Of a stretch of 64,000 bases of DNA, positions 26,214 through 50,574 are shown piece by piece; the first letter of the stretch is position 1, and each line of letters opens with the position of its first letter. A program made the position numbers and the translations under genes. Below the pieces are notes generated by a model. That model had not been told where the DNA came from and searched no databases. It saw only the letters and a program-made list of their open reading frames with translations. The DNA lies in the NCBI RefSeq assembly GCF_020745735.1, contig NC_083409.1:12895259-12959258 (forward strand), written 5' to 3'. The stretch is from Hemiscyllium ocellatum (Eukaryota).

Positions 26214-26329
26214 TTCTCTCTCTCTCTGTCTCCCCATTCTCCCTCTCTCTCTCTGTCTGTCTATCCTAGAGAGACATTGATGTGAACTGTGCTGAATTAG
26301 ACCATTTGTCCCATTGTGTCTGTGCTGGA

Positions 26330-27205: not shown

Positions 27206-27209
27206 GATC

Positions 27210-27492: not shown

Positions 27493-27523
<31 letters not shown>

Positions 27524-27715: not shown

Positions 27716-27782
27716 GTATCCCAAGTGGTGACAGTTAATTGCAGGTCAAATCTCCCTCTGCTCTGGCCCACTAATGGATGTT

Positions 27783-29429: not shown

Positions 29430-31400
29430 CTCCTGTAGTTGAATATCCTGCTGGCAGGCTTCAGCCTTCCACATACAGAATGGGAAAGTCGGGGAGGTCA
29501 GAATGTGATGTTGGGATCCTTGGCACTGTCCCCCAGCAATGTGGTTGACTCTCTATTGCCCTGTGAAATGGCCCAGCAAGGCTCTCAATTGTATCAATTG
29601 TGACGACCTCTCAACAAAGAAATGAAACCGGACGGACCACAGGCATCGATGCAGAGACAGTAAAGGTATTGACATACCTGCTCCATCCTCCTTACTGACA
29701 TCTGGGAGGAAGTGCCAAATTCAGGAGAGCTGTCTCACAGACTAGTCAAGCAACAGCTTGACACAGCCATACTCACAGAACCATACCTTACAGACAATGT
29801 CCCAGACACCACCATTACTGTCCCTGCATGTATCCTGTCCCACAGAAAGGCAAACCCAGCAGAGCTAATGACACAGTGGTCTACAGCCAGGAGGGAGTTA
29901 CAGTGAGAGGCCTCAAAGTTGATTCCAGACCCCATGAAGTCTCATGACTCCAGCCTAAACATGGGCGAGGAAACCTCCTGGTGATTACAAGATATCTTGC
30001 TCCCTCGGCTGATGAATCAGTCTCTCCTCCATGTTGAACAACATTTGGAGGAAGCACTGAGGGTGATGACAGCACAGAATGTACTTTGGGTGGTGGGGGC
30101 GGTTTCAATGTCCACCACTGAGAGTGGCTTGGCAGCAGCATTACTGATCGAGTTGGTTGGTTCCTAATGGGTGTAGCTGAGGGACTGGCTCTGCAGCTGG
30201 TGGTGAAGGAACCAAACAGATGGAAAAACGTACTTGACCCCCATCCTCACCAATCTTGTGGCTGTAGATGCATCTGTCCTTGACAGTATTGGTAAGAGTG
30301 ACCATAACACAGTCCTTGTAGAAACAAAGTTTGACCTTCACATTGAGAATACCCTCCATTGTGTTGTGTGGTACTATCACCGTGCTAAATAGGACAGACT
30401 CCAAACAGATATTGCAACTCAAGGCAATGATCATGAATAGGGAGCATTGCCAATGAGTGCACAATCTCAACATCTCATATACTGAGACAGTCCATGTTCG
30501 ATTGCAGCAATATCTGCACAATATCCAATTTCATCTGAGAAGCAATATTTTCGATTGGTGCCTTGCAAATACCAGCCAATGACCATCACCAATAATAGAC
30601 AATCTAGCCATCGTCCCTTGACAGTCAATGCTATTACCATCACTGAATCCCCACTATCAACATTCTGAGGTACTATTGACCAGAAACTCAACTGGACTCA
30701 CCCCAGAAACACAGTGATTACATGAGCAGGTTAGAGGCGAGGAATACTGTATCGAGTAACTCACCTCCTGATTCCTCCAAAGCCTGTCAACCAAGTCAGG
30801 AGTGTGATCGAATACTCCCCACCTGCCTGGATAGGTACAGCTCCAACAACATTCATAGAATAATGGTGTCACAGCATCATGCAGCACAGAAACAAACCCT
30901 TAAGCCAAACTTCTATATTCTGACCAGGTTTTCTGAAGTGAACGAGTCTCATTTGCCTGCATTTGGCCCATATCCCCCTAATCCATTCCTGTCTATGTCT
31001 ATCATATCCTATGTCATTCTTATCCACTCAGAAAGCTTGATACCATCCAGAGCCAAGCAGCCTCCTTGATTGGCATCACATCCACAAAGCATCCACTCCC
31101 ACCAGTGCTCCATAGCAGCAGTGTGTATTATTGATCAGATGCTCAGCAGAAACTCACCAAAGATCCTCAGATAGCACCTTCCAAACCCATATGGGAAAAT
31201 AGAAATTGCACAAAAAGCTCAGCAGATCTGGCAGCATCTGTGGAGAGAAATCAGAGCACAAAATGTTAACATTGATTTCTCTTCACAGATGCTGCCAGAC
31301 CTGCTGAGCTTTTCCAGCAATTTCTATTTTTGTCTCAGATTTACAGTCCTTATGCTTCCCTCCTAAACCCACGTCCACGTCCATTTAGAACAAGAGCAGC
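29430..31400 (+). mobile_element. Decayed L2-clade LINE (endonuclease and RT 3' parts)
   Basis: PNSGELSHRLVKQQLDTAILTEPYLTDNVPDTTI endonuclease motif; 3' region matches the L2 at 57839-59920. Confidence 0.75.
31196..31330. repeat. 58-bp inverted repeat (hairpin) built from PLE-type termini
   Basis: Arms 31196-31253 and 31273-31330 pair at 53/58 positions around a 19-nt loop. Confidence 0.9.
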
Positions 31401-31768
31401 AGATACATGGGAACACTTCCCATGAGTGAATACTTAAAACCAAATGAAGTGTTCCTCAGGAGGGGAGAGGGAATGTTCAAGATCCTGAGCTCCATTTCCC
31501 AGCCCAGGCAGTTTGTCTCCCAATGAATGTATGAGATGCCAATTTGAAGCCCAGCTTCAGAGCAGTATCACTCTGTGGACATGAGGTCCATAAGAGGGAA
31601 TTGGAGATTGAGCTGTAAAGGAAAGATTTGCTGAGTTATGGGGAGAGAGCAATGGGGCTAATTGAGTAATTCCAAGGCATGATGGGCTGAATGGCCGCCT
31701 CCTGTGCTGTCAGATTCCAGGGAGAGCAGATGGTTCACAGTTTTCTCCCATCTCAGTAACAAATACCC

Positions 31769-31922
31769 AGCTGCTCCGAGCTCCTTCTTTCACTTCCTCT
31801 CTTGGTGAAGTTTCAACCTTGCGATCTGACAGTCTTTGCAGTTATTTTTTACACTGGGGCTTTCTGCTGTGGTCAGAATCTCTAATAATTTGTGTCCGAT
31901 CAGTGACAATCACAGCAGCTAA
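31769..31922. promoter_or_regulatory. Conserved duplicated non-coding block (copy A), candidate lymphoid enhancer or promoter
   Basis: 151/154 identical to the reverse complement of 48411-48564. Contains EICE GGAAGTGAAA (minus, 31797-31788) and RUNX TGTGGT (31868-31873). Confidence 0.5.
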
Positions 31923-31929
31923 GAGCAGT

Positions 31930-32620
31930 CAGGACTGAGGAGCCAGGCTCACTGGGAAACACATTAGGAAGATCAAAGCCATCCTCTTCAGCTCCTGGTA
32001 CAAGCTCCATCCCTCTCCCTGAGCACTGTCTGCTGCTCAACCAGGCTCTTTATAACTTTGGCCTCATCTTTGAGGCTGATTTGAGGCCCAAGTCCTCCAC
32101 ATCACAATTATCAGCCACTGAAAATCTCAACCATGTTTTTGAGACTCCAAATGTGACAATTCCAATGTTATCCAGGCCCACGTCACAGCCACTGCCTTCC
32201 GTAAATATCAGCTCATCCCAAACTCTGCTATCGTTGTTCCAACTCACACCAAGTCCACCCCACACCCCCGTCCCTATCTTCCGTCCCACCATGACCACCA
32301 CAATCCTCACTGACCGACATCAGCTCCTGGTCCAGCAACACCTTGATTTTCAAATTCTCATCCTTGTTCTTAAACCGCTCCCTGTCCTTCCATCCTCCCT
32401 ATCTCTGTGACCTCCTCCAAGCCACCTCAGTGTGGTTAGCAATCTTGGATATATGGCTCTCTGTTTCTTCATCCAAGTCATTGAGAAATATCGTGAAAAG
32501 ATGAGATCCCAGCACAGATCCCTGGCAACACCACTACTCACATCTGGCTCATTGGAACACATACACATTATCCTTCCTCTCTGTCTCCTAGACGGACCCA
32601 TTTCTGACACAAGGTAAATA
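31930..32620 (+). mobile_element. L2 RT 3' fragment (arm A of the inverted duplication)
   Basis: L2-like RT C-terminal sequence, homologous to 47730-48400 on the minus strand. Confidence 0.7.
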
Positions 32621-32914
32621 CATTTCTCAAATTCCAACCGATTCCATGATTTGGAGGTGCCAGTGTTGGACTGTCGTGTACAAAGTTAAAAATCACAGAA
32701 CACCAGATTGTAGTCCAACAGGTTTATTTGGAAACACCAGCTTTCTGAGCGGTGCTCCTTCATCAAGTAATTGTGGAGCGCAAGATCTGATTCCATGTTT
32801 CTTTTGTGGAATGTTCTTAAATGTCTTCTGGAATTCCCTATGGTCAATAGCCATCGACATTCCCTTAAATCCCACATTAGGGACCTCCTAACAATGTGTA
32901 ACCTCGTTAGTTAA

Positions 32915-33205
32915 AGATTCGATCAGATTCCCTACAGTGTGGAAACAGACCCTGTGGACCAACAAGTCCACGCTGACCCTCCGAAGAGAAACCCACCCAG
33001 ACCCATTTCCCTCGGAACTAATGCACCTAACACGGTGGGCAATTTAGAATGGCCAATTCACCTGACCTGCACATTTTTACACTGTGGGAGGAAACCCACG
33101 CAGACACAGGGAGAATGTATAAGCTCTACACACATCCGAGGCTGGAATTGAACCTGGGCCCCTGGTGCTGTGAGGCAGCAGTGCTAACCACTGAGCCACT
33201 ATATT
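32915..33205 (-). mobile_element. HE1-like SINE
   Basis: Runs from gatcagattccctacagtgtggaaac to gtgctaaccactgagcc. Confidence 0.85.
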
Positions 33206-34014
33206 GAACCTTCAATGTCTGAACCTTTGTAAATCCATGCTGATTCTCTCAGACCAGTTCATATTTGTCCGTTATTCTGTCTCTAAAACCAGACTCAATC
33301 ACTTCCTGACAACAAACATTCAACGGAGATGTTCATTGTGAATGAGGTTACTAAACCGCTAGCACTGACATGAGTGGCTGAAGAGCCTCCTTCTGAGCTG
33401 GAGCCTTCTCTGTCTCATTGATGGGAATATTTTACAGATTAAAAATTAAAGACTAACAGCAATTTTTTAAAAAACATTAAAAACTCCTCAAATAATTCCC
33501 ACATACAGGGCCGGGCGATGTGTAGTAATTGTACGATGGGGAAGCTGGTGGAGCCCATTGTAGCTCAGAGTGACCACATCTACAGCAAGTGTTGGTTGCT
33601 CAAGGCACTCCAGCTCAGAGTTGATGAGCTGGAATCTGAGCTTCAAACACTGCGACACATAGGGGAGGAGGCGAGTTACCTGGACACTGTGTTTGGGGAG
33701 GCAGTCATACCTTGTAGGTTAAATACTTCAAATTATAGTCAGTGGTTAGGGACAGGAGGGTGTGACGATAAGTGAGCAGGTCGATGCAGCCTGAATGTAG
33801 TATTGCAGGAGTCTCAGCTCATTCTCCAACAGGAATGAGGTACATGCTCCCTGTGTCAGTGAGGGAAATGTTTGTTTGGAGAATGGGCAAACCTAGTGTA
33901 AGCATTTTGGTGATAATGACCATAACTCTGTAAGTTTCAAAGTCATCATGTAAAGAGATAAAGATGAAGCAAAAATTAAACGTGTAAACTGGGGGATATC
34001 CGATTTCAACTAGG

Positions 34015-34390
34015 CAAAAGTGAGGACTGCAGATGCTGGAAACCAGAGTTTAAATCAGAGTGGTATTGGAAAAGCATTGCAGGTCACGCAGCATCTGAGG
34101 GCAAGAAAATTGACATTTTGAGCAAAAGCCCTTCATCAGGAATAGAGGCAGGGACTCTCCAGTGTGGAGAGATAAATGGAGGTGGTGGGTGGGGAGGGGC
34201 GTGTTTAGGGAGAAGGTAGCAAAAAGTACAATAGGTGAATGGGGTGGGGATGGAGGTGATAGGTCAGAGGGGAGGGTGCAGCAGATAGGTGGGAAGGGAG
34301 ATTGGCAGGTAGGACAAGTCATGAGGACAATGCTGATCTGGAAGGTTGGAACTGGGGTAAGGTGGAGGGAGGGAAATGAGCTCTTCAACC
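34015..34390 (-). mobile_element. PLE family-1 terminal region
   Basis: aaagtgaggactgcagatgctgga..., with a hammerhead-like motif at 34112-34139. Confidence 0.75.
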
Positions 34391-34639
34391 ATGTACTGAA
34401 AGAGACGCGACTTCACCAGTTTCCTCATTTCCCCTATGATTGTACGATTCCATGTGGTTGTCTGTTAACTGCCCTATGGGCAGTAAATATTGGCTTGGTC
34501 AGAGATGCCCATATCCTATGAATGAATGAATGAAAACATGCATCATGGTCCAGGAGGCCATTCAGACTGGGGGAGCACAAAGGAAAGAGGAGGATTTGAT
34601 AATGAGGGGGACTGATAGCATCCTTTGTGAGCAGGATTG

Positions 34640-36890
34640 AGAGTCCCACATGGTGTGTTGCCTGCCTGGTGCTCAGGTAAGGGGCATCTCGAACCAGCTT
34701 GAAAGGATATTGGAGTGGGGGCGGGGAGGAGGATCCAGTTGTTGTCGTGTTGAGACCAACAACATTGGCAACATAGGCTAAAGGTCCTATTTGGGCAATA
34801 TCAGGAAAGCTATCAGAAGGATATTGATTAAACGGATGGAGAGAAATAAGAAAGAGATGAATACAGTATCAGTGCTGAGGAACAGATTCCAGTGAATGGA
34901 CCAAATGAGAGTTCTATATATGAATGCACGGAGCGTAAGGAATAAATACAATAATCTGCGGGCACAAATTCAAATTTAAGATTATGCTGTAGGATCAATT
35001 ACTGAGACATATTTGCAGAATAGTTAAGATTGGGAACTAAATATATCGGGTTAGAAGGTTCACAGGATGGGCTTGGGGAAATGACAGAAGAGGTGGAGCA
35101 GCTTTATTCATTAGAAACAAAATTACTTCAATGGTGAGGGAGGTTAAAATGAGGGGAAAGCATTCAGTGGAACTGAGAAGCAGGAAAGGATCTAAAACTG
35201 TAATAGATGTTGGATACAGACCCCCCCTGGCAGCAGCTCTGAGGTGCTGGATTGTATAAATGTAGGAATTAGGCAAGTGTGCAGCAAAGCCAGTGTATTA
35301 TTAATGGGGAAGTTTAATTTTAACTTAGATTAGGAGAGAGACAAGCCCTCTGTCAGAAAGGTAGTGAATTTCTGGAGGGTATCCGGAATAGTTACCAAAA
35401 GCAATAGGTCCTGGATACAACAAGGGGACAAACAATATTGGAATTAGTAATGAATAATGAACCAGATTTAGTTGGTAACTACTTGTACATGAACATTTAT
35501 CAAATAGTGATCATAACATGATCGAGTTCAGTGTCACATTTGAAAGTAAACAGCATGAATCAGCTGCTAGAGTTTGAGATTAAGGTAAGGGCCGACTTTA
35601 ACGAGATGCGACAGAGACTGTCCACAGTAAACTGGGAAAATCTGCTCATGGGTAAAACAACTGAAGAACAGTGGGGGATGTTTAAAGAAACATTCAACAT
35701 AAAACAAAACCAGTTTATACCTGAGACGGGAAAGCTCCACTTCTTCGAACAAACAGCAATGGACAATAAAGGAGATTAGGGAAAGAATAAAACTAAAACA
35801 AGGGCTTACAAAAAAGCAAGTAAAATGACATCATCTGCTGAATGGGAAAGATACAAAGGGCCACAAAGCAGCTTCGAAGAGCTACCAAAAGGGATTCTGA
35901 AAGGAAACACGTAAGGGATATCAAAATCAATAAGGAGAAATGTTTCAGTTCCATAAAAGGGAATCTGGGAGGTCAGGAGCAATGTTGGTATTAAAGACTG
36001 AAAGTGGGGGATATTGTCAGTGACAATGGGGAAATGACAGCCATGTTAAATAAATACTTTACCTCAAGATTTGCAGTAGAAAAGGAGGAGGACTTGCCTG
36101 AAGTCCCAAAAGAATTAACGGGGATTAGGGACAGGGACTGAATAAAATTAATGCCAGAAAAACATCTGTAATGAGGAAAATAATGAAAATGAAGAGTGAC
36201 AATCCCTCAGGATCTGATATTCTCCATCTGAGGGTGATAAAGGTAGCAACAGACCACATTGTAGACACTCTGACTATAATCTTTCAGAGTTCCCTGGATA
36301 CAGGAGTCGTACCTTTGGCTTGGAAATTTGCAAACGTCACTTCACGTTTAACAAGGATTTGAGAGAAAATCCAGGGAATTACAGGTCACTCAGCCAGCGT
36401 TTGTAATGTGGAAATTGTTGAAGTCTATAATCAAGGATGGGGGTAACTGAAGACTTTGAAAATGGTCAGTTATTCAGGGAGAGTCAGCATGGATTCATGA
36501 CAAGGTGGTCATGGTGAAAAACCTCATTGAACTTTTTTGAAGAGGAGACTAACGTATTGGACACAGTAATGTCAATGGATGTTGTTTATTGGGACTTCCA
36601 GAAGACATTTGATAGTGTCCTATGTAAGAAAACGTCAACTTCGATAAATGTCCACAGAATTGAGGCTAAAATACTGGCACATTGGAATGCTGGTTGAGTG
36701 ACAGGTGACCGAAAATAGGGATAATGGGTAAGTGCTGAAATCGGCAGGATGTGACGTGTCCAATAGGAATGTGTGCTCACAACTCAGTTAGTTACATTAT
36801 TTATCAATGACTTGGATAATGGCACAGAAAGTCAGATATTTCAGTTTGCTTATAACACAAAGTTTGGCAGCATTGTAGACAGTGTCGACA
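34640..36890 (+). mobile_element. Decayed CR1 (ORF1 remnant, endonuclease, RT)
   Basis: VCCLPGA, YMNARSVRN, YRPP, KADFNEMRQRLSTVNWENLL and RT motifs, with stops. Confidence 0.8.
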
Positions 36891-37095
36891 GAGTCAGAGA
36901 GTCATACAGCATTCAACCAGGGCAGTCTTTAACAGAGTATAATTTATCTTTGATATACAACTCCTTGAACTCCATCTCTCTCTCTCTCGCTGTATCCTCC
37001 TCCTCCCTCTCTACCTCAGCTGCATGGATCTTACTCTGATTTTAATCCCTCTTTTCTCTCTACAAGCTCCATCTCCCTCTCTCTCAAAGCTCCCA

Positions 37096-37126
<31 letters not shown>

Positions 37127-37150
37127 GAGCTCCATCCCTCCCTCATTCAG

Positions 37151-37224
37151 AGCTGCTGGGTGCCCAATCTGAGCCAATGCCAGTGAATCCCACAGAGAAC
37201 AATGATGGGATATTTGGCGTGTAA
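37151..37224 (+). pseudogene. Apparent terminal coding exon remnant of an unidentified gene (copy 1), with AATAAA at 37339-37344
   Basis: Acceptor-like ccctccctcattcag|ag, then LLGAQSEPMPVNPTENNDGIFGV*. The last nine codons and stop differ from copy 2 only synonymously. Confidence 0.5.
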
Positions 37225-38009
37225 GCTTGATGATGTAAATGTGAACCATTGCAGCAAAGACATTACAGATGGTTTGTACAGACAGCAAAGCCCAAACCAG
37301 AGCATTGTGTCAATCAACACAGAACTAATGAAAGCTTCAATAAAAACAATTATTAATGTGATTCTCAGAGATGTGTCATTATTCTCATTACAAATGGCTG
37401 TTTCCCAGTGAAGGTCCATCCTGCTGAATATTAGATACAGCTGGGCTTTGAAGTGTAATGTGGGGAAGTGTGACCTTGTTCACTTTCACGAAAATCATTC
37501 AAATGTGACTGGCGCACACTTAAGTTCAAATGGCAATTGGGTATAATCCTGAAGGTGTAAGAGAGGCAGAAACTCACATAGTTCTAGTTATCAATGAGGT
37601 CTTATCAACACCCGTTTCACAAATCAATTTTAGGAAAGAATAATACACTTCCAATCTTATCTATGCAATCTTCTCGTCTGTGAATAGGGAATGAATCTGG
37701 CTTTGGGACTATATTCACTTTCTTAGAGTCTACACAGAATCAAATTGAACAGTTTGGTTCAGGAACCAATGTTACAGGAGATCTCCAATTACTCTGACTT
37801 GGTTCAATCAACTGATTCTCCAACATGGAAGCCCTTTGTTATGTTGGCCTGTTTCTGTTGGTTTTTTTTTTATTGTGTCAGTCCCAGAAACATACAGACA
37901 GATGTTTCAGAACTTACAGAAACAGCCTGGACAAACATCTACTGAGTTTGAGACGGTGAGGTAGCAGTGCTAACCACTGAGCCCCCGTGCCACCATGGTT
38001 AGCTTCAGA

Positions 38010-38330
38010 ACAGAGTGCTGATGAGGAAGTGGAGACCGCCTCATGGACCCCTAGATGAAGAATGGTTGGTTAGACATTGGCTAGTGGTCCCACCCAGCTA
38101 TCAGAGGGAACTAGTTCAAGGAGCACATGAGACTCCCATGGCAGATCACATGGGGATTTGGAAAACATTGGCATCCAGAAACAGGCATTTTACTGAGCTA
38201 CAATTGGATAAAGATGTGGTGCAGTTTTATAAAACCTGTCCTACTTGTCAAGTTGTAGGTAAACCTCAATACAAAACAAGTATCCTTAATTCCTCTCCCA
38301 GTATTTGAGGAACCATCGTGTCATGTACAG
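38010..38330 (+). mobile_element. Gypsy integrase H2C2 zinc-binding fragment
   Basis: LMRKWRPP...LVVPPSYQRELVQGAHETPMADHMGIWKT...FYKTCPTCQVVGKP. Confidence 0.85.
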
Positions 38331-38359
38331 ATTTGTCAAGTAGTGAGTATAATGGAGAT

Positions 38360-39480
38360 GGGGATGACCCTTCCTCCTTTCCATAATAACTATGAATCTT
38401 ACGGACGTATGTTCACTATCTCCAAAATGCTCACCCACTGACTCTTCAACCATTTGACTGGCTTCATTACCAAGGATTGAGTCCAGCACTGCCCATGTTT
38501 AGAGGGACTACCGATGTACTGGCACCAAAAGCTCTCCTGTGGGCTTTAAAATTTCTACCATTCACACAAAGGCAATCCCAGTTCATGCTAGAGAAGTTGA
38601 AATTCCCCACTAATATAACCCTATTCCTCTCACACCTCTCTGTGATTTACCAACATATCTGCTCCTTTCTCTCCATCTGACAATTGGGAGGCCTGTAGTA
38701 TAATCTCAGCAAAGTGATTGTCCTTTTGTTATTTCTACCTTTACCCAGATGGCCTCATTTGAAGAGCCTTCCAAGAAATGCTCCTTCAATCTTGCAGTGA
38801 TGGTCTCCTTTATCAATAATGCAATACACACACCACTCTTGCATTCCCTCTATCCCACCTGAGACTTCTCTACCCTGGAATGTTGAGCTGCCAGTCCTAT
38901 CTTTCTTCAATCATGTCTCAGCAATTGCAACAATTGCAGACATTCCCACGTGCTGGTCAATGCTTTCAGTTCAACCATCTTACGAGTCAAGCTCCTTACA
39001 TTAAAATAGATACAGTTCAGCTTTCTGGTCTTCATGTGTTCCTGATCCTGTCCTAGTGGTTACCCAGTGGTTTTCTGTGTCGCCCTTACTCTCCCATGAA
39101 GGGAAACATCCAGCATTTCCCCTGTCAAGCCCCTTAAGGATTTGATACATTTCAATAAGATTCCCTCTTATTCTTCTAAATTCCAGGGATCAGATTCCTA
39201 ACCTGTTTGACCTTTGCTCATAAGACAATCGCTCCATACCAGGAATCAGTCAAGGGAATCATCTCTGAACTACATCCAATGCAGCTCCTGTCCTTTCTTC
39301 AATAAGGAGCCTGATACTAGACACCATATTCCAGATGTGCTCTCACCAAACCCCTAACCCTAACAGCTGCAGTAAAATGTCCCTGCTTTTAGATTGCATT
39401 CCCTTTATAAGGAGCAACAACACTCCATCTGCCTCCGGATTCACTTGCGGTAGCTGCGTTCTAACTTTGTGATTCATATC
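38360..39480 (-). mobile_element. CR1 composite (3' RT fragment joined to endonuclease fragment); inverted paralog of 53100-54270
   Basis: Same fragment junctions and the same (TTAGGG)2 insertion in both copies. Confidence 0.75.
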
Positions 39481-39663
39481 CCCCACATTACACTCCATCT
39501 GCCCAATATTTCTCCAAAGCCCAGCTTTATCGAATACTCAGCAGGATGGACCCCATTCACTGGGAAAAAGTCATTTGTAACAATGCTCTGGTTTGGGTTT
39601 TGCTGTCTGTACAAACCATCTGTAATGTCTTTGCTGCAATGGTTCACATTTACATCATCAAAC

Positions 39664-39861
39664 TCACACTCCAAATATCCCATCATTATTCTCCATGGCT
39701 GAAGAATATGGCCCTGGCTGATCCTTTCCCTGCAGCAAGGAACCCAGTGGAATGTCATCATTGGAATTGATATTTGAGAGGAACAGGTCCACTCCGGATC
39801 TGGATCTCAGGTTTGGGAATGTGCGGCGATGCTGGATCAGAGGATGGAGTCTCTTCCAGAA
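39664..39861 (-). CDS. Apparent terminal coding exon of an unidentified gene (copy 2); functional status unknown
   Basis: Acceptor ttatattttcccag|, then a 65-codon open frame FWKRLHPLIQHRRTFPNLRSRSGVDLFLSNINSNDDIPLGSLLQGKDQPGPYSSAMENNDGIFGV*. The 3' UTR is homologous to copy 1 but the AATAAA segment is deleted. Confidence 0.5.
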   Translation of the reverse strand, partial: FWKRLHPLIQHRRTFPNLRSRSGVDLFLSNINSNDDIPLGSLLQGKDQPGPYSSAMENNDGIFGV

Positions 39862-40834
39862 CTGGGAAAATATAACAATGAGAATCCAATCAGACAGACC
39901 CTTGTCAGGGAGGGAGGGAGGGGGATGTCAGTGCTGGGCACAGTAAACCAGCTCATGGTGTCCAAGAGGTCGAGTGGTCAGTTTCTGGTTAGAAATTGAA
40001 GCTTCTGCAGCTTCTCCTGGCTTCCAGCTCCATCATTAAATCAGGAGCAGTTTCAGAGAGGAACTCCATTTCTCATCAGCACACACTGACACCATCAACA
40101 GAACAGAAGGAATCGGGTCAGCAGGAGGCCATTCAGTCCCTCCAACCTGCTCCACTAAACCCCAGGGAGTAATGTCAAATAGACTCCATTTGGCCTCATC
40201 AGAGTATCCCCTTATGCCAGGAATCAGCTTCACGAATCTTTGCTGCACTCCTTCCAGGTAGAGTCTGGGTGAGTCTATCCTTCCATCGGGAAGGAAATCA
40301 AAACTGGACCCAGTGCTGCAGGTGCGGCCTCACCAAGGTCTGACATAATTGGAATAAGACTCCTTCCCTCAGACATGGACAACAGCTGGCTCCCAATAAT
40401 TGGCTCCCTCTCCGTCTCTCTCTTTCTCTCTCTCTTTTTTTTCTCTCTCTCTCCCCCTTTCCGTCTCTTTGTCTTCGCATCACCCCATCTCTCCCTCTTT
40501 CTCAGTCTCGATGCTGACTTCTACCTCTGAAGGGGTTCTCTGGTGGTCAGTGTTTAATAGAAGCGGCTGCGTGTCAGTATATTTTCGATGCTGTAGGGTT
40601 TATGAGCATGGGGGGAGGGGGTTCAGGCTCCGTTCTTTGATGTCAGGCAGTGATGCCTGTCCCAGTGGGTCAGACTGTGATGCTGCTGTTTGCTGGCACT
40701 GACACTATGATATGGATTGCAATGTCACTCAGTGTGACAGGAGGTTACATGGCTTGATCAGTGGCGGGGAGGAGCAGACTGAACAAGGAGCTGCAATCAT
40801 CAGTCACTGCTGAAACCCTTCACACAGCCCTCAC

Positions 40835-40890
40835 CGTTCAGAAACTTCATCACCAAAGATTCTTTCAGCTCCTTCATGACAGCCCTGGAG
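40835..40890 (-). other. Candidate 56-nt internal exon
   Basis: Consensus-like splice sites tctttctctgtttccattttcag| ... aacg|gtgagg. Two frames are open (SRAVMKELKESLVMKFLN or LQGCHEGAERIFGDEVSE). Confidence 0.3.
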
Positions 40891-40959
40891 CTGAAAATGG
40901 AAACAGAGAAAGACATCTTTTCAAGATGCTCCTGGACACAATGTACACTGTGTATTCCC

Positions 40960-42240
40960 CACTAATGCATGCAAAATCATGTCTTACAAACTTGATTGAG
41001 TTTTTGAAGAAGTAACAAAGAGGATTGATGAGGACAGAGTATTAGACGGGATCTGTGTGGACTTCAATAAGGCATTCAACAAGGTTCCACATGGGAGACT
41101 GGTTAGCAAGGTTATGTCTTATGGAGTACAGGGAGAACTAGCCATTTGTATGCAGAACTGGCTGAAAAGTAGAAGACAGCAGATGGTGATGGAGGGTTGC
41201 TTTTCAGACTGGAGGTCTGTGACCAGTGGAGTGCCACAAGGGTTGGTGCTGAATCCACTATTTTTCGTCATTTATATAAATGATTTGGATGTGAATATAG
41301 GAGATATAGTTAGTAAGTTTACAGATGACAACAAAATTGGTGGTGTAGTGCACAGCGAAGAAGGTTTCCTCAGATAACAATGGGATCTTGATCAACAGGT
41401 CCAATGAGCTGAAGAGTGGCAGATGGAGTTTAATTTAGAGAAATGCGAGGTGCTGCATTTTAGCTAAGTAAATCTTAGCAGGATGTATGTACTTAATGGT
41501 CAGGTCCCAGAGAGTGCTGCTGAACAAAGACACTTTGGAGTGCAGTTTCATAGCTCCTTGAAAATAGAGTCACAGGTAGATAGGATAATGAAGAAGGCAT
41601 TTGGTATGCTTTCCTTTATTGGTCAGAGCACTGAGTACAGGAGTTGGGAGGTCATATTGCGGCTATACAGGACATTGGATAGACCACTTTTGGAAAATTG
41701 TGCACAAGTGCGGTCTCCATCCTATCAGAAGAATGTTGTGAATCTTGAAAGGGTTCAGAATAGATTTACAAGGATGTTGCCAGGTTTGGAGGATTTGTGT
41801 TATAGGTAGAAGTTGAACAGGTTGGGGCTGTTTTCGCTGGAGCATCAGAGGCTAAGGGGTGACCCTATAGAGGTTTATAAAAGTATGAGGGGCATGCATA
41901 GGATAAAGAGATAAGATCTTTTCCCTGGGGTTGGGGAGTCCAAAACTAGAGGGCATAGGTTTAGGGTGAGAGGGGAAAAATATAAAAGAGACTTGAGGGG
42001 GCCAATGTTTCACGCAGAGGGTGGTGTGAGTGTGAAATGTGCTGCCAGAGGAAGTGGTGGAAGCTAGTACAATTACAACATTTAAAATGCATCTGGACAG
42101 GTATATGAATAGGAAGGGTTTCGATGGACATGGGCCGGGTGTTGGCAGGTGTACAAGATTGGGGTGGGATGTTTGGTCGGCATGGATGGGTTAGACTGAA
42201 GGGTCCGTTTCTGTGCTGAACATCTCTATGACTTAATGAC
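40960..42240 (+). mobile_element. CR1 RT 3' half with tail
   Basis: MDFNKAFNKVPHGRLVSKV, SGVPQGLVLNPLFFVIYINDLD, KFTDD. Confidence 0.9.
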
Positions 42241-43099
42241 TCCAGGAGGAGGTTGTTCAGCCCCTCGTGTCAGTGCTATCTGTTTACTAACCTCACTCAC
42301 AATGAACATCTCTGATGAATGTCTGTTGTTGGGAATTGATTGAATCTAGTTTTAGAGACAAAATGTCTGACAAATCTAACCTGATCAGAGTAAGTCATCA
42401 TGGATTTAAAAAGGTTCAGACATCTTCAACTAATCTGGTGACATACTATAAAGAGGTCACTAATGTGTGAGATAAGGGAATGTGTTGTTTATATGGAAGT
42501 TCAGATGACATTCAAGGAAGTTACACACAAATGTTATAATGTTATAATTGAAACAAAGAGATGACAGATAAACATATTCTGGATCTTTCTTCACAAATGA
42601 ATTCTCAAATATATCTTAAAAATGTTGGTGAACCCAGGCTGTTATCAGAGGAAGGAACTAAAGGAATCAGTTTTTGTAGGGAAATGGTTCTGGGAAAATT
42701 AAAGTATGTTAAATCAGCAGGGACAAATAATCTATTTTCGGGAGTACTTCAGGAAGTGGTTGTAAAATACTGGAAACACTGACAGTTATCTGTTTGTCGG
42801 CTGTGGGATAGGTTCTAGAGAGTGGAGGGCAGCTAATTTAACACAACTATTGAAAAAGAGAGAGAGAGGGAAAATAAGGAATTTGAGACCAATTAACCGG
42901 ACATTAGCAGTGGAGAAACTGTTCAAGATCAGTCTAAAATATTTTATAGCTTAGCACTTTGAAAACAGTGACAGAATTGGACAGAGTCAGCATGGATTGT
43001 CGAAAGGGAAATCATGCGTAACAAATCACCTGGAATTGTTCAAGGATGTAGCAAGTGGATGTGATCATGTGGATCCCACGGATATGGTTTATTTGGACT

Positions 43100-45600
43100 T
43101 TGTAAAGGGGGAAGGCAGATGATTCTGTGGTCAAAAATGAGACTTCTGAATAGCATGTTGCCTCCGAGGTGCACAGGTCAGGGATGTGTCAGATCAGCTA
43201 CAGGACATTCTGAAAGGGGAGGTGAACAGCGAGCTGTGATGGTGAATGTAGGTACAAATGATATCAGTAATAAATGGGATAAGGTCCTACAAGCAGAATT
43301 TAGGAGGTAGGAACCACGTTAAAAAGTTGAACCTCAGAGGTAGTAATCTCAGGATTGCTACCAGTGCCACGTAGCAGAAATGAAAAAAAAAGGCAGGATG
43401 AATGCGTGACCTGAGAGATGGTGTAGGAGGGAGATGCTCAGATTTTTGGGACATGAGGACCAGTTCTGGGGGAGGTGGGACTATTACAAATCAGATGGTC
43501 TACACCTGGGCAGGACTGGAACTAATGTCCTCTGGGGTACTTTTGCTCATACTCTTGGGGAAGGTTCAAGATAAGGTAGCAGAGGGATGGCAAGATTAGG
43601 GAACCCTGGATGACAGATGAAATTGTGAGACTAGCTAAGAGGACAAAGGATGCGTACATAAGGTCTCGGTGGCTGTAAGCATATAAAGCTTTGGAAGAAT
43701 ATCGCAAAAGTAGAACAGATCTGAAATGAGGAATTAAAGGGGATAAAAGGGGTCATGAAATATCATTAGCAAACAGGGTTAAGGAAAATCCCAAAGCCTT
43801 TTATTTATATAAAAGAAGCAAGTGGGTGACCAGTGAAAGGGTTAGCCCACTCAAGCACAAAGGAGGAAAGTTAGGTGTAGAGTCAGAGAAAATGGGAGAG
43901 TTCTTAATGAGTACTTTGTTTCCGTATTCACCAAGAAGAGGGAAAAGATGGATGTTGAAATTGGGGATAGATCTTTGATTACTTTAGGTCAAGTCGGTTT
44001 AAGGGTGGAGGAAGTGTTGAGTATTCTAAAAGGCATGAAGGTGGACAAGTCCCCAGGTCAGGATGGGATCTATCCCAGGTTACTGAGGGAACCGAGAGAG
44101 GAAATAGCTGGGGCCTTAACAGATATCTTTGTAGCCGCCTTAAACGTGGCAGAGATCCCAGAGGACTAGAGAATTGCTAATGTTGTCCCCTTGTTTAAGA
44201 AGGGCAGCAAGGATAATCCAGGTTATTATCAACCGGTGAGCCTGACATCAGTGGTAGGGAAGATGCTGGAGAAGATACTGAGGGATTGGATCTATTTACA
44301 TTTGGAAGAAAATTGACTTATCAGTGATAGGCAGTATGATTTTGTGCAGGGAATGTCATATCTTACTAACTTAATAGAATTCTTTGAAGAAGTGACAAAG
44401 TTGATTGATGAGGAAAGGGCTTTTTGTGTCATATACATGGACTTCAGTAAGGTGTTTCACAAAGTTCCCCATGATAGCCTGATGGAGAAATTAAAGTCAC
44501 ATAGGGTCCAGAGTGTACTCGCCAGATGGATAGAGAATAGGCTGAACAACAGGAGGCTGACAGTGGTAGAGGAAGGGAGTTTCTCAAAATTGAAAACTGT
44601 GACCTGTGGTGTTCCACAGGGATCCATGTTGTTTGCGATATACATAAATGATCTGGAGGAAGGTATAGGTGGTCTGGTTGGCAAGTTTGCAGATGACACT
44701 AAGATTGGTGGAGTAGCAGATAGTGAAGGGGACTGTCAGACAATGCAGCAGAATATAGATAGATTGGCGATTTGGACAGAGAATGGGACAGATGGAGTTC
44801 AATCTGGACAAATGCGAGCTGATGAATTTTGGAAGATCCAATTCTAGAGTGAACTATACAGTGAATGGAAAGTCCTGGAGAAAATAGATGCACAGAGAGA
44901 TCTTGGTGTTCAGGTTCATTGTAACCTGAAGGTGGCAACACAGGTCGATAGAGTGGTCAAGAAGGTATGTGGCCTGCTTTCCTTCATCGGGTGGACAACT
45001 GAGTACAAAAGTTGGCAGGTCATGTTAGAATTGTATCGGACTTTGGTTTGGCCACATTTGGAATACTGCCCACAGTTCTGGTCGTCATATTACCAGAAGG
45101 ATGTGGATGCTTTGGAGAGGGTGCAGAGGAGGTTCACCAGGATTGCCTGGTATGGAGGGCACTAGCTATGGAGAAAGGTTGTGTAGATCAGGATTATTTT
45201 CATGAGAAAGTTAAAGTTTGAGGGGAGACCTGCTTGAGATGTACAAAATCATGAGAGGGAGAGACAGAGTGGATAGCACAAAGCTTTTTCCCAGAGTGGG
45301 GGACTCAATTACTCAGGCTCATGAGGAAGGTTAGAGAGAAAAGTTTAAGGGAGAAATGCATGGAAAGTTCTTTACACAGAGTGTTGTTGGTACCTGGAAC
45401 GTATTGCCAGCCAAGGTGATAGAGGCAGGCATGATCACACCATTAAAGATGTATCTAGACAGACACATGAATGGGCAGGGAGTAAAGGGATAAAGATCCT
45501 TGGAAAATTGATGACCAGTTTAGGTAGATGTTCTGGATTGGCGCAGACGTGGAGGCCCGAAGGGTCTGAGTCTGTGCTGTAATTTGTTTTGTTCTTTGAA
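43100..45600 (+). mobile_element. Internally deleted CR1 (ORF1 esterase remnant plus RT)
   Basis: VMVNVGTNDI, DKSPGQDGIYPRLLRE, YMDFSKVFHKVPHD, KFADDTKIGG. Confidence 0.9.
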
Positions 45601-45609
45601 CTGACGAAG

Positions 45610-46890
45610 CTCAGTGGCACAGAGTGATCTTGGGGTACTTGCCCACTGATCTCTGAATGTGGCAAGACAGGTTAACAGAGCAGTTATGAAGGCACTTGCA
45701 TTTGTCATTCAGGTAATTGCTATAAAAGCAGGAGGATATGTTGCAGTTAAGCAGAACATTGGTTAGGCCACAGCTGGAGTACTGTGTGCAGTTCAGGTCG
45801 CCACACTGTAGGAAGGATGTGATTGCACTGGATGGGGTGCAGAGGGGAATCACCAGGATGTTGTGTGGGATGGAACCTCTTAGTGATGAAGAGAAATTGG
45901 AACAGCTCGGTTTGTTTTCTTCAGAGCAGAGAAGGTGGAGGGGGGACCTGATCGAGGTGTATAAGGTTATGAGGGGAATGGACAGGGAGGAGAGAAAGCA
46001 GCTGTTCTCCTTTGTCGAGGGGGGTGGGTGGGTGGAGGCTCAATAACAAGTTGGTTCACATTCAGTGTGAAAGGTAACAGGTTTCAAGATGTTTTGAGGA
46101 AATTGTTTTTCACCCAGAGGATGATGTGGTTCTGGAATGCACACCGTGGGAAGGTAGTTGAAGTGGGAAACCTCATAAACCTTAAAAAGTACTTGGGTGA
46201 GTAGTTGAAATGTCATAACATTCAAGCAATGGGCCTTGTGTTGGAAAATGAGACTGGTGTAGGTTTAGTGTAAATTGGCTGGTACACAGTTAATGGGCCA
46301 AAGGGCCTCCTCTGTACGGTGTGATTTTATGATTCTATTGTGTGCAGTTTTGGGCTCAGTATCTGAGAAATGATGTTCTGGCTGTGGAGGGAGGGAAATG
46401 AAGGTTTACCAGACTGATCCCTGGGACGACAGCACTTATATCTGTTGAGAAACTGGATCAGTTAGGACTATATTCACTGGAGGTTAGAAGATTGAGAGGA
46501 ACCGCACTGAAACCTTTAAAATCCGAACAGGACAAGACCGGAAAAACACAGGAAGGATGTTCCTAATGACTGGAGAATCCAGAACCAGGAATTAGTTTAA
46601 AGAAAAGGGAAAGGCCATTTTGGACTGAGATGAGGAGACATTTCTTTAGCCAGAGAGTGGGAAGTTGGTGGAATATTCTGTCACAGAAAGCAGTTGAGCC
46701 CAAACCATTAAATGTTTTCAAGAAGATGATAGGTACAGTTCTTGGGACTGAAGGGATTAAGAGTTATGGGGGAAAATGGGAACGGGGGCTAAGTTGAATA
46801 ATCAACCCTGGTCATGTTGAATGGTGGAACTGACTCAAAGGACTGAATGGCCTCCTCCTGCTCTTAGTTCCTTTGCTTCTATGTTTGAGA
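45610..46890 (+). mobile_element. Two tandem CR1 3' fragments
   Basis: LVRPQLEYCVQFRSPHCRKD and CR1 3' UTR motifs, each present twice. Confidence 0.8.
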
Positions 46891-46919
46891 GACTGTTCAT
46901 AAACATGGAAACAATGGAA

Positions 46920-47730
46920 TTATAGAGTCACAGAGTCATCGAGTCCTACAGCACAAAGACAGGTCCTTTGGCCCAAACTGGACCGTGCTGACCAAAATGT
47001 CCATCCACACTAACCCCATTTCCCTGCACTTGGTCCATATCCTTCAAATGTTTTCCTATCTATGTATTTGTCAAAATGCTTTTTAAATGTTGTTAATGTA
47101 CCCCCCTCAATCATTTCCACTGCAGCTCATTCCATTTGCGGATGACCCTCTGTACAAATGCTGTCCCTCAGGTTCTCTTTTATTCTAACCTTAAACTGAT
47201 GCCCTCTACTCCTTGATTCCCCAACTCTGGGAAAAAGACTGAATGCATTCACTCTATCCATGTCTCACATGATCTTTTCTACTTCTAAAAGATCCCCCTC
47301 AGTCTCCTCCGCTCTAAGAAATGAATCCTACTTTGTCCAACCTCTCCCTGTCACTCAGATCATTGAGTCCAGGCAACCTCCTTGTACATTTCCTCTGTAC
47401 TCTTTGCGATTTAATAATATCCTTCCTTTAACAAAGTGAACAAAACTGAACACAATACTCCAAGTGAGACCTCACCAACGTCCTGTACAATTTAATATAA
47501 CTTCCCAAATTCTATACCCAGTACCCTGACTGATGAAGGCCATGACACCGCTTCTTGTAGTGTCATCTGCAAACTTACTAATCATGCTTTGCAGATTCTC
47601 ATCCAAATTATTGATAGAGATAACAAACAGTAATGGGTCCAGCACTGAACCCTGAGGCACTCCACAAGTCACTGGCCCCCAGTCAGACTAGCATCCTTCC
47701 ACTATGATCCTCTGCTTCCTACCATTAAGC
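46920..47730 (-). mobile_element. CR1 3' fragment
   Basis: CGVPQGSVLDPLLFVISINNLD...KFADD on the minus strand. Confidence 0.8.
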
Positions 47731-48410
47731 CAAAGAGAGAAAAAATATCTGTCTTTGGTGAGGAATTCATTTGGGTGTAGGCGGCTTTTGGATGTAGGGG
47801 ACAGAGAAGAGGGATAATGTGTGTGCTCTCCAATAATGTGAATATTGGTGTCCCCAGGGATCTGCGCTGGGACCTCAGCATTTCATGATATTTCTCAATG
47901 ACATGGATGAAGGAATAGCGAGCCATTAATCCAAGATTGCAGACCACACTGAGCAACACAGTTTGGAGGAGGTTACAGAGATAGGGAGAGTGAAGGACAG
48001 GGATGGATTTGAAAACAAGCATGAGAATTTGATGACCGAAGTGTTGCTGGTCCAGGAGCCAATGTAGACATGGTGTGCAGGGGATTGGGGGAACAGACGT
48101 TGGTGCAAGTCTGGACATGGGCAGCAGACTTTGGGAAGAGTGAGTGCAGTGGCTGTGATGTGTGCAAGCACAACATTAGAATGCCCATGTTTGGAGTCAC
48201 AACAGGATGGCTGAGATTTTCAGTGGCTGATCTTTGTGATGTGGAAGATGTGGGACTCAGATCAGCAGGAAAGATGAGGCCCAGGTTGAAAAGAGTCTGG
48301 TTGAGCAGCAGACAGTGCTCAGGGAGAGGGATGGAGTTTGTACCGGGAGCTGAAGAGGATGGCTGTGACCTTCCCAATGTGTTTCCCAGTGAGCCTGACT
48401 CCTCAGTCCT

Positions 48411-48564
48411 TTAGCTGCTGTGATTGTCACTGATCGGACACTTATTATTAGAGATTCTGACCACAGCAGAAAGCCCCAGTGTAAAAAATAACTGCAAAGA
48501 CTGTCAGATCGCAAGGTTGAAACTTCACCAAAAGAGGAAGTGAAAGAAGGAGCTCGGAGCAGCT
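48411..48564. promoter_or_regulatory. Conserved duplicated non-coding block (copy B)
   Basis: AAAGAGGAAGTGAAAG EICE (GGAAGTGAAA 48536-48545), RUNX ACCACA (48460-48465) and MEF2-consensus TTATTATTAG (48442-48451). Confidence 0.5.
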
Positions 48565-48639
48565 CACAAACACACACACCTGCACTCGGAGATCAGAAAC
48601 AAAATCCAGCAGCAGCTCTGTCTCCAAGCTGTGAAACCT

Positions 48640-49250
48640 GCACAGAATTGTTCCCTCATTCAGTTTTTAACTGGCGGGATAGACCAAGCAGGGGAGGCAA
48701 CACAGTGGTGTGTACAGTCGGAAGGGAGTTGCCCTGGGAGTCCTCACCATTAACTATGGAACCCATGAAGCCTCATGACAGCAGGTCAAACATGGAGAAG
48801 GAAACCTCCTGCTGATTACCACATAGCACCGCCCATCCCTCCAGCCTCAACTGAGCAGTCAGTCCTCCTCCATGTTGAACAACACTTGGAGGTAGCACTG
48901 AGGGTGGGAAGGATGCAGGATATACTCTGAGTAAAGCACTTCAAAGTCCACCATCAAGAGCTTCTCAGAAGCATCACTACTGAGCAAGCTGGTCAAGTTC
49001 CACCTGATTCAGCTGCTAGACTGGACCTGGGGCAGGTGGTGAGGGAACCAACAAGAGGGAAAAACATACTCACTATCACCCTCACCAATCTGCCTGCTGC
49101 TGGTGTAGCTGTCCATGACAATATCAGTCAGAGTGACCACTGCACAGTCCGTGTGGAGACAAAATCCTGTCTTCACATTGAGAATACCTTGCATTTTGTT
49201 GGGCAAGAGATATGGGATATCAGGAAGGACTTTGTTTTTAGCAGCAATTG
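48640..49250 (+). mobile_element. L2 endonuclease fragment
   Basis: VREPTRGKNILTITLTNLP...ISQSDHCTVRVET. Same orientation as, and diverged from, the L2 at 29.8-30.4 kb. Confidence 0.75.
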
Positions 49251-50574
49251 GCAACGACTTCAAAATTAGTGCCCATTCAGGTGAGGCAAGTGAAGACACT
49301 CAGGGATTGCAATGGCAGATTGGATGGGCTCTTGATGGAAATAAACCTGCAAGGCCCTGGGGGTCGAGTAGGGGAGGGGGTGGGACTGACTGGATTGCTC
49401 CATGAAATGACAGCATTTACCTGACAGGCTGAATGTTCTCCCCCTGTGCTGGAAATAGGTCTCACTCAATGAGGGGTTCACAAATAGAGAGTTTGGATGC
49501 AGTAAATACAGGAAAAAATGTTTCTCCAGGCAGGAGGGTCAGTAACCAGAGGGCACACATTTCAGAAAGGGTCTGAAGAACAAGAGCGAAGATAGGAACA
49601 TTTTTTATCCAGCGAGTTCATGATGACTGTCTGCAAGGTGAGTGGAAGTGGATTCAACAGCAACTTTCAAAAGGGCATTTGGAGAAATAGCTGAAAAGGA
49701 AACCATTACAAGGTTATACAGGAAGGGCTGGGGAAATGGGACTCATTGAACTAATTTGACTAACAGTCACAATAGGCCCAGTGACCTCTGTCTGTGCTGT
49801 ATAAGAGCTTACACACACTTAGTCTCACCTTTACACAAAACCTGGGAGAAACAGACAACCCAGTTTACAGACAAGTGTTTTCTCAAGCAAAACGCTCTTG
49901 AACAAACTCAGAAAACAGGCCAGACTAGATTTACTGGACTATATCAGCAAATCAATGGCAAGTGAACAGTGAACCAAAAGTAATGGCACTCAACAGTATA
50001 TTCAATAGCACAACAATTGAGAGGGGAGGGATGAAGGGCAGGGGGTCAGAGAGCTCTAGGGGTCTGAAGGCTCTGCTGTCAATGGTGGGATGGAGGAAGC
50101 AGCAATGCGCAGGAGACCAGCGAGAGAAGATGGAAGGGGGAGGGAGAGAATGTGAGTCTGCAGCAGGGCACAGAGTGATGGAGGAGGGAGGCCATGGAGG
50201 CAATTGGCTGGCAGTGAGGTCAGGGTTCATTCTGGAACAACACATGGAAAGACAGGGAAGAGACCACGCCATATCAGACAAGCTGGCGTTTATGGAATTT
50301 GGCATCAGGAAGCTGGGAAAGGACATTGGAATCATATAGTTAGAAGGCAGGACAAACAGGAATTAGGGTTTCTGTGGTCAAGGGGCTGAGGTAGTGCAGA
50401 GATGGAAAATGCCGTTAAGACTGAAATAAGAGACCTACGTGATGGAGAGGATGTAGGGTTTGCAGCTCACGTATTGGACAGTCCCGAGGGAAAGAGGCCC
50501 ATGTTTACTGGTCTCTTCTGAAGCATCCAGTGGGAAGGAGGTCCATGTTTACTGGTCCTATGGGAAGATGGACC

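Follow-up and report, generated by a model that had tools for sequence, protein, structure and literature searches.

Results

A kappa V-J-C cluster and an old inverted duplication

We analysed a window of 64,000 nucleotides from the shark Hemiscyllium ocellatum (NC_083409.1, positions 12,895,259 to 12,959,258). Its minus strand holds a kappa light-chain cluster whose V, J and C segments are all intact, with 12- and 23-RSS (Table 1). After the V exon come CACAGTG, a spacer of 12 nt and a nonamer. Neither tblastn with the V and C proteins nor blastn with the V-J and C regions detected a second kappa cluster within the window.

Upstream of the leader lie the two arms of an old inverted duplication, which align as collinear inverted HSPs and are 76-84% identical outside the unit described below. 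This unit is an element duplicated in inverted orientation within an old segmental duplication of a shark kappa light-chain region. The same locus carries other recent duplications (pairs 90-98% identical within the window). The leader ATG lies 5.7 kb from copy A of the element and 22.4 kb from copy B, in agreement with the 5.7 and 22 kb of the original prediction. That both copies are situated upstream of V holds directly for copy A only, because the side of copy B has no V-J-C cluster within the window. No V was found on that side within 15 kb either, an observation that tells against an enhancer. The flank beyond the unit, which the original prediction had called L2-derived, had no further copy in the window and was low-copy in reads at a likeness of at least 85%; from about 32300 on it resembles what we take to be an old LINE tail.

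Table 1. Positions of genes, duplicated sequences and motifs in the window (position 1 is its first nucleotide)
Feature	Position	Strand	Remark
Intact kappa C exon	14135-14455	-	about 10.6 kb downstream of J
J kappa segment	25055-25132	-	23-RSS; GTAAGT splice donor
Kappa leader, leader intron and V exon	25527-26056	-	leader ATG at 26056; V exon 25527-25827
AGAGGAAGTG in the V promoter	26205-26214	-	about 150 nt upstream of the ATG
Arm A of the old inverted duplication	27033-32590		collinear inverted HSPs with arm B
Arm B of the old inverted duplication	47795-52960		collinear inverted HSPs with arm A
Full unit, arm A	31769-32044		276 nt: block, 8-bp insertion and 114 nt
Full unit, arm B	48297-48564		268 nt, lacking the 8 bp
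154-nt block, copy A	31769-31922		3 differences from copy B
154-nt block, copy B	48411-48564		inverted relative to copy A
Ets-IRF composite element GGAAGTGAAA, copy A	31788-31797	-	motif match
Ets-IRF composite element GGAAGTGAAA, copy B	48536-48545	+	motif match
NF-kappaB-like site GGGGCTTTCT, copy A	31856-31865	+	9/10 of GGGRNWYYCC; found post hoc
RUNX/CBF core TGTGGT, copy A	31868-31873	+	copy B: ACCACA at 48460-48465
MEF2 consensus YTAWWWWTAR, copy B only	48442-48451		consensus match

The conserved unit extends beyond the 154-nt block

The two blocks form a gapless 154-nt pair with 3 differences (copy A/copy B: C/T at 31801 and TT/AA at 31890-31891), as had been claimed for the same coordinates. 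Given the 21.9% divergence of the arms past 32045, the binomial probability of at most 3 differences in 154 nt is about 4e-13. An ATG is absent from both strands of either copy, again as claimed. Each copy has 3 CpGs, and their observed/expected ratio is 0.41 versus 0.06 in the next 270 nt. The claim that all CpGs are kept is correct for the two copies but not for the contigs of three other organism codes, in which 31897-31898 is CpA.

The original prediction took these 154 nt as the unit. The block is real, but its limit is set by an 8-bp indel and not by a drop in conservation: copy A contains an insertion at 31923-31930, and the 114 nt that follow (31931-32044) are 95% identical between the arms, a level statistically indistinguishable from that of the block (Fisher p 0.18). 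A maximum-likelihood change point was located at 32044, and the sliding identity profile gave the same boundary. Mismatches amounted to 9 of 268 positions inside the unit versus 109 of 498 beyond it (p 1.7e-13), corresponding to 96.6% identity between the arms over the full unit and 78% from 32045 on. The natural conserved unit measures 276 bp in arm A and 268 bp in arm B instead of 154 bp, and within this conserved non-coding element of about 276 bp the block is the stretch that is kept best.

Motifs in the two copies

Both copies carry the predicted perfect Ets-IRF composite element and the RUNX site. The composite 10-mer GGAAGTGAAA equals the mouse lambda-B site in all 10 nt (PMC4872103), and the pattern GGAANNGAAA has 7 matches in the window versus 4.0 expected. 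Two of the three differences between the copies decide the fate of a MEF2 site, which is intact in copy B only, as originally noticed; its counterpart in copy A (31882-31891) is broken by the TT. Since contigs of three other organism codes carry AA, like copy B, the intact site is probably the ancestral state. In copy A, which neighbours the gene, the MEF2 consensus has been lost, and this too speaks against an enhancer.

The NF-kappaB-like sequence GGGGCTTTCT lies 2 nt from the RUNX core and has its counterpart at 48468-48477 in copy B, but is a near match only. In the part common to both copies, the unit contains no CANNTG, hence no CASSTG E-box, and no consensus NF-kappaB site; a CAGCTG at 31768 is confined to copy A and straddles the unit edge. 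Among nine preset kinds of B-cell motif, copy B has three, a number reached by only 0.7% of the 154-nt windows of the whole stretch, while the gene-proximal copy A has two, reached by 9.5%. The choice of motifs was made post hoc, which also tells against an enhancer. The V promoter contains AGAGGAAGTG, a 10-mer that also makes up the Ets half of the composite site of copies A and B, with 5 matches in the window versus 0.21 expected (2 of the 5 inside transposon copies).

The block is better conserved than its flanks

We then compared the block with sequencing runs filed under other organism codes. Runs of six other codes contained 23-85% of its sampled words and none of those of the adjoining 154 nt. 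By code, 85% of the sampled 31-mers of the block were present for A-D, 77% for E, 61% for F and 23% for G; 31-mers of the adjoining 154 nt occurred only in code E runs (15-39%). Contigs from three of the six codes covered block and flank sequence. In contig X1, 3 of 154 positions had diverged in the block versus 23 of 255 outside (p 0.003), in X16 3 of 100 versus 27 of 218 (p 0.007), and in X10 3 of 154 versus 18 of 307 (p 0.06). The block is thus 2-3% diverged where the same contigs outside it are 6-12% diverged, a 3- to 4.6-fold difference within single contigs whose power is limited. In X16, divergence also rises at 32045. The comparison uses one contig per run, with uncertain orthology. 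In the contigs of all three codes, then, divergence is lower within the block than in the flanks of the same contig, and this contrast argues for constraint and not for gene conversion alone. The original prediction would have been refuted had the block been absent or unconserved in relatives; it was present in the other codes and better conserved than its flanks.

Copy number, RNA and coding potential

Each run yielded one contig spanning the block, at a depth of 4.6-10.7, compared with 1e4-2e5 for nearby repeats and about 1e5 for a SINE 1 kb away. The X1 contig continues collinearly from the block into the left flank of copy A. Within the window no third copy was found, even with 7-nt seeds. 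Low contig depth and the missing third copy rule out a young high-copy repeat, the identity that had been named as fatal to the original prediction. An exact 28-mer across the composite site had no match in public metagenome contigs.

An Rfam scan of 26000-55000 (E at most 1) gave no match on the unit; the sole matches were miRNA-like, far below threshold and inside a high-copy repeat (31204-31322). Folding z-scores of -0.38 and 0.02, with both strands considered, indicated no more stability than in shuffled sequence. Without an Rfam match and with fold energies equal to those of shuffled controls, a structured non-coding RNA or known RNA family was rejected. None of the runs on record as RNA contains the block. 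The X16 run, guessed to be RNA, behaves like DNA because repeats and intergenic sequence are covered alike. In a polyA single-cell RNA run about one read fell on the block, which is no proof of silence. A coding exon was likewise rejected, as the 38-codon plus-strand frame is expected by chance and lacks RNA support. The unit is probably non-coding.

Discussion

A candidate upstream B-cell enhancer

The original reading of the block as a B-cell enhancer or promoter is partly supported, namely by motifs, position and conservation. We hold with about as much confidence as doubt that the unit is an upstream B-cell enhancer, that is, a lymphoid cis-regulatory module near the kappa V-J-C cluster. 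It would act from 5.7 kb upstream of the minus-strand cluster at 14.1-26.1 kb. A PU.1/SpiB-type Ets factor and IRF4/8 would jointly bind GGAAGTGAAA, RUNX would bind TGTGGT, and a MEF2 factor may occupy the AT-rich site that copy B and other species keep intact. Together, the bound factors may open chromatin and activate the V promoter, which has the same Ets 10-mer, and the presumed outcome would be transcription, rearrangement and perhaps hypermutation of this cluster in B cells. Copy B would represent this module in the partner arm, with a partner cluster outside the window. The light-chain enhancers known so far are situated either in the J-C intron or 3' of C. The position of the unit 5' of V differs from theirs and counts against an enhancer.

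Alternative explanations

The unit could also be a functionless patch of about 270 bp, copied between the arms or between cluster paralogues by gene conversion or recently duplicated, in which the motifs would be coincidental. We regard this as unlikely, though it fits several observations: identity changes in a step with a single sharp edge, the tract has a length typical of conversion, both copies in the window have G at 31898 in contrast to the A of three other organism codes, and the window contains the composite motif only about twice as often as expected by chance. The other pairs at 90-98% identity point the same way, and with such recent duplications at the locus conversion plausibly contributes to the identity of copies A and B. 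Conversion does not, however, slow divergence between species, and yet the block differs by 2-3% there against 6-12% outside. Six other organism codes keep 31-mers of the block but not those of the adjoining stretch, and the step at 32045 recurs in X16. The high paralogue identity expected of a neutral conversion tract is present, but the block is also less diverged between species than its flanks, which speaks against such a tract, within the limited power of that comparison. The gene-conversion alternative raised originally can account for the likeness of the two copies, to which it may have contributed, but not for the likeness between species.

Equally unlikely, with all its variants taken together, is some other functional type of conserved non-coding element: a promoter or first exon of a sterile transcript or lncRNA, a boundary, a DIVAC-like element with little enhancer activity, or a regulator of a non-Ig neighbour. 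Such an element would share the conservation evidence cited for an enhancer. It would also suit the lack of a V near copy B and the distance of 19 nt between the Ets site and the sharp edge, an arrangement also seen in TATA-less lymphoid promoters. In chicken and human lambda enhancers, DIVAC function requires this set of MEF2, PU.1-IRF4 and CBF sites (PMC3972084). The polyA single-cell run with its one read or so, and the absence of the block from all runs on record as RNA, speak against a transcript, and homology stops just after the Ets site, so that no common first exon is expected on that side. Low-copy, old transposon-derived sequence travelling with a duplicated kappa cluster unit, without function, seems improbable. 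The block ends form a 7-nt inverted repeat (AGCTGCT...AGCAGCT), the flank resembles a LINE tail, and contig depth summed over 31700-31899 amounts to 2-3 times the depth of the one contig that spans the block, which suggests a few extra similar copies per genome. Depth is still 3-4 orders of magnitude below the real repeats of the same stretch; target-site duplications and any other copy in the window are lacking, and the better keeping of the unit than of its co-duplicated flanks would be left unexplained. Least credible of all is a terminal coding exon on the plus strand of copy A, with 38 codons from the AG at 31769-31770 to a TAA at 31883 and a hydrophobic tail. Its frame is open from the exact homology edge, an AG precedes it in both copies, the in-frame difference at 31801 is synonymous and the remaining differences follow the stop codon. 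But in most stretches of 154 nt chance alone should leave 38 codons open in one of six frames, the copies have unrelated sequence before the AG, which makes a poor acceptor, high identity runs 160 nt beyond the stop, and there is about one RNA read and no splice joint.

Comparison with known light-chain enhancers

Returning to the B-cell enhancer that we favour, among its closest counterparts are the Ig lambda enhancers. Those of human, mouse and chicken have MEF2 and PU.1-IRF4 sites in common, and each is, like the shark unit, a short module beside a light-chain gene; in these enhancers and in the shark unit the motifs are more conserved than the intervening sequence (PMC3972084). The mouse and human enhancers (E-lambda 2-4 and 3-1) have a PU.1-IRF4 site, lambda-B, whose mouse 10-mer equals the shark GGAAGTGAAA, and their lambda-A MEF2 site may have its counterpart in the shark MEF2 consensus about 90 nt from the composite element in copy B and in other organism codes. 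In contrast, the lambda enhancers lie downstream of C and the shark unit upstream of V; the shark unit has no CASSTG E-box and an NF-kappaB-like site of only 9/10, and its gene-proximal copy is without the MEF2 consensus. The mouse Ig kappa 3' enhancer (PU.1/NF-EM5, the latter being IRF4) shares with it the Ets-IRF class GGAANNGAAA and the association with kappa, whereas spacer bases and locus position differ. Mammalian kappa is a single translocon locus, while the shark has a V-J-C cluster with its own upstream element. The chicken Ig lambda 3'Core/DIVAC elements, with CBF (RUNX), PU.1 and C/EBP-like sites within about 200 bp, overlap the shark motif set (PMC3972084). Hypermutation targeting by the chicken 3'Core/DIVAC was demonstrated by assay, while the shark likeness is known from sequence motifs.

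Implications for shark antibody genes

Sharks have many separate Ig clusters, and an open question is how one or a few of them come to be activated in each B cell. A 2008 paper on heavy-chain exclusion proposed infrequent formation of promoter-enhancer complexes and named no enhancer (PMC2435157), and in the literature we found no described enhancer for any cartilaginous-fish Ig cluster, light-chain clusters included. A short conserved element with the PU.1-IRF composite of mammals and birds is a concrete candidate sequence. More tentatively, and with clearly less confidence than in an enhancer as such, we suggest that a grammar of MEF2, PU.1-IRF and RUNX sites may go back to an ancestor shared by sharks and bony vertebrates, and may stand upstream of every kappa V-J-C cluster as a switch for transcription and rearrangement and for the targeting of hypermutation. 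Were this true, the unit would, as far as we could find, give a cartilaginous-fish Ig cluster its first defined cis-regulatory element. If the unit works, its enhancer grammar would be as old as the antibody genes of jawed vertebrates themselves.

Results

The two copies of a 154-nt block, at 31769-31922 (copy A) and 48411-48564 (copy B), are reverse complements of each other that differ at three positions (31801, C/T; 31890-31891, TT/AA), the near-identical inverted pair described in the original prediction. Its motif claims held as well: an Ets-IRF composite and a RUNX core are present in both copies and a MEF2 consensus is intact in copy B alone, copy A having lost it through the TT/AA difference. 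ATG is absent from both strands of both copies, as had been stated. Each copy contains three CpGs, so the claim that CpGs are kept is right for the window; one of them is not kept elsewhere, because position 31898 reads A in X1, X10 and X16, contigs assembled from one sequencing run each of three other organism codes. That is, every factual element of the original observation was confirmed, while the boundaries had to be corrected.

Sequence features of the kappa cluster and of the duplicated block
Feature	Position	Strand	Remark
Leader ATG	26056	-	
V exon	25527-25827	-	heptamer, 12-nt spacer, nonamer (12-RSS)
J segment	~25055-25093	-	23-RSS, GTAAGT donor
C exon	14135-14455	-	intact; beyond ~10.6-kb J-C intron
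V promoter Ets 10-mer AGAGGAAGTG	26205-26214	-	~150 nt upstream of ATG
V promoter CRE-like TGACGTGG		-	
V promoter octamer-like ATTTACAT	26163-26170	-	one mismatch to ATTTGCAT
V promoter TTTATAAAG		-	
Ets-IRF composite GGAAGTGAAA, copy A	31788-31797	-	sequence match
Ets-IRF composite GGAAGTGAAA, copy B	48536-48545	+	sequence match
RUNX core, copy A	31868-31873		
RUNX core, copy B	48460-48465		
MEF2 consensus, copy B	48442-48451		

The block as reported stops at 31922 because of an 8-bp indel (31923-31930, copy A alone), beyond which conservation continues. The next 114 nt (31931-32044) contain six differences, a rate not significantly different from that of the block (Fisher p 0.18), and only from 32045 to 32590 does identity drop sharply to ~78% (109 differences in 498 aligned columns). 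The maximum-likelihood change point lies exactly at 32044 (identity contrast p 1.7e-13). On the opposite side, homology ends abruptly at 31769/48564. The natural unit is therefore wider than the block and comprises 31769-32044 in arm A (276 nt) and 48297-48564 in arm B (268 nt), with 96.6% identity. The stretch that adjoins copy B at its sharp end (48565-48600) opens with a short (GT)n-like run, followed by DNA unrelated to the copy A flank and then by a transposon in opposite relative orientation to the arm A copy at 29871-30366. Homology beyond copy B thus breaks off where DNA of arm B has been rearranged or inserted.

Comparison of the window with itself placed the unit within an old inverted segmental duplication, whose arms (A, 27033-32590; B, 52960-47795) are collinear over five patches of 76-84% identity. 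These patches are low-copy in the sequencing runs, which argues for a real duplication and against a chance row of transposons. The best-kept low-copy patch outside the unit (28088-28530/51986-52437, 84% identity, with a 72-nt core of 92% identity at 28251-28322) may represent a further conserved element, weaker than the unit; its arm A member is found ~2 kb upstream of the V leader. Arm B terminates at 52960, directly against one member of a second inverted pair (38367-39581/53046-54266, 1.2 kb, ~90% identity) with a symmetry axis different from that of the block-holding arms; small additional inverted copies lie at 37195-37450. A further inverted pair of 240 nt (58960-59199/60383-60622, 98% identity, 1.2 kb apart) probably arose recently by local inverted duplication of part of a transposon, since one of its arms is a member of a LINE-tail family that has four copies in the window.

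On its minus strand the window contains a single kappa light-chain cluster, whose J-C intron is packed with LINE reverse-transcriptase fragments. The cluster (14135-26214) is apparently complete and functional. Copy A lies 5.7 kb and copy B 22.4 kb upstream of the leader, in agreement with the distances originally given. Copy B is oriented opposite to copy A, and no V, J or C segment was detected on its side through the window end.

We then examined the block in other organism codes. A k-mer search of sequencing runs detected 31-mers of the block in seven codes (85% of the sampled 31-mers in codes A-D, 77% in E, 61% in F and 23% in G). For the adjoining 154 nt (31931-32084), used as control, only runs of code E contained any (15-39%), a contrast that is partly a threshold effect, as evenly spread differences destroy 31-mers and three clustered ones do not. 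Contigs of three runs (one per run) were aligned over 27900-33899. Within the block, positions 31890, 31891 and 31898 are the only ones at which X1, X10 and X16 depart from copy A. X1 shows 3/154 differences in the block versus 23/255 outside (p 0.003) and X10 3/154 versus 18/307 (p 0.06), both counted without differences private to the respective contig; for X16 the values are 3/100 versus 27/218 (p 0.007). Divergence of X16 steps up at 32045, the same point as between the window copies. X1 runs gapless from 31682 to 32090, through the left flank peculiar to copy A as well as its extra 8 bp, and, judged by this alignment, is an apparent orthologue of copy A. At 31890-31891 each of the three contigs carries AA, so the intact MEF2 site of copy B is probably ancestral and TT a change found in copy A of this genome alone.

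Discussion

What keeps the unit so similar? Gene conversion would account well for 97% identity over ~270 bp between copies lying in 80%-identical arms, and the locus is dynamic, with other pairs in the window 90-98% identical. However, conversion does not lower divergence between species, yet divergence in the contigs of other codes is three to almost five times lower in the block than in the flanks of the same contigs. We therefore favour what these alignments suggest, purifying selection on a functional element, to which conversion possibly contributes. A young or high-copy repeat was rejected. The block is low-copy and kept across codes, and so withstands two of the grounds for refutation named in the original prediction, membership of a young repeat family and lack of conservation. 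Each of the three runs covers it with one spanning contig (depth 4.6, 10.7 and 8.6), values similar to those of other low-copy contigs or two to three times as high. Elsewhere in 27900-33899, depth reaches up to 1e5 for a SINE at 32900-33300 and 1e3-1e4 for other repeats. No third copy of the block was found within the window, even with 7-nt seeds.

A coding exon was rejected as well. A 38-codon plus-strand frame leads from the homology edge to a TAA at 31883, but an open frame of this length would be expected by chance, high identity runs well beyond the stop codon, the DNA upstream of the AG is unrelated between the copies, and the frame is without RNA support. In a polyA single-cell RNA run about one read fell on the block, which is evidence neither for nor against transcription from an enhancer or promoter. 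The unit matched no Rfam family, and neither of its strands folded better than shuffled sequence. Far-sub-threshold Rfam matches (mir-4782, MIR847) at 31204-31322 on the minus strand lie inside a high-copy repeat (contig depth ~1.7e4) and most likely mark a repeat hairpin, not a microRNA gene. The very high-copy tRNA-derived SINE region at 32500-33300 (summed contig depth up to 2e5) is abundant in reads of the polyA single-cell run, with poly-T loose ends, indicating that SINE-containing transcripts are common there.

Some function of the unit is, in our view, likely. A B-cell enhancer, as originally proposed, is the best single reading, to which we give about even chances. That interpretation is supported in part: conservation and low copy number stand, and from the composite site, the motif set, the motif score and the Ets 10-mer of the V promoter we infer the enhancer function. 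Cartilaginous fishes possess PU.1-family, IRF4/8, RUNX and MEF2 factors. In gene orientation, the unit presents, in this order, predicted MEF2 (ancestral state), RUNX, 9/10 NF-kappaB-like, Myb-like and Ets-IRF composite sites. In the mouse lambda enhancer, the lambda-B site printed in PMC4872103 has exactly the sequence of this composite 10-mer. E-box, NF-kappaB, MEF2 and PU.1-IRF4 sites are common to the human, mouse and chicken lambda enhancers, the chicken 3'Core carries E-box, CBF, C/EBP and PU.1 sites, and mutating these sites impairs function (PMC3972084). Among nine preset kinds of B-cell motif, copy B contains three (reached by 0.7% of the window's 154-nt windows) and copy A two (reached by 9.5%). 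The Ets 10-mer AGAGGAAGTG of the unit recurs in the V promoter; it has five matches in the window versus 0.21 expected, two of them within transposon copies.

Several points weaken the case for a B-cell enhancer: all motif evidence is post hoc, the composite pattern alone occurs seven times in the window versus four expected, the shared unit is without an E-box, the gene-side copy (A) lacks the MEF2 consensus, and copy B is without a gene on its side within the window. To our knowledge, the place of the unit upstream of V is unlike that of every known light-chain enhancer. In the literature searched, we found no enhancer described for any cartilaginous-fish Ig cluster. On purely computational evidence, the unit is a concrete, testable candidate for this long-missing regulatory element.
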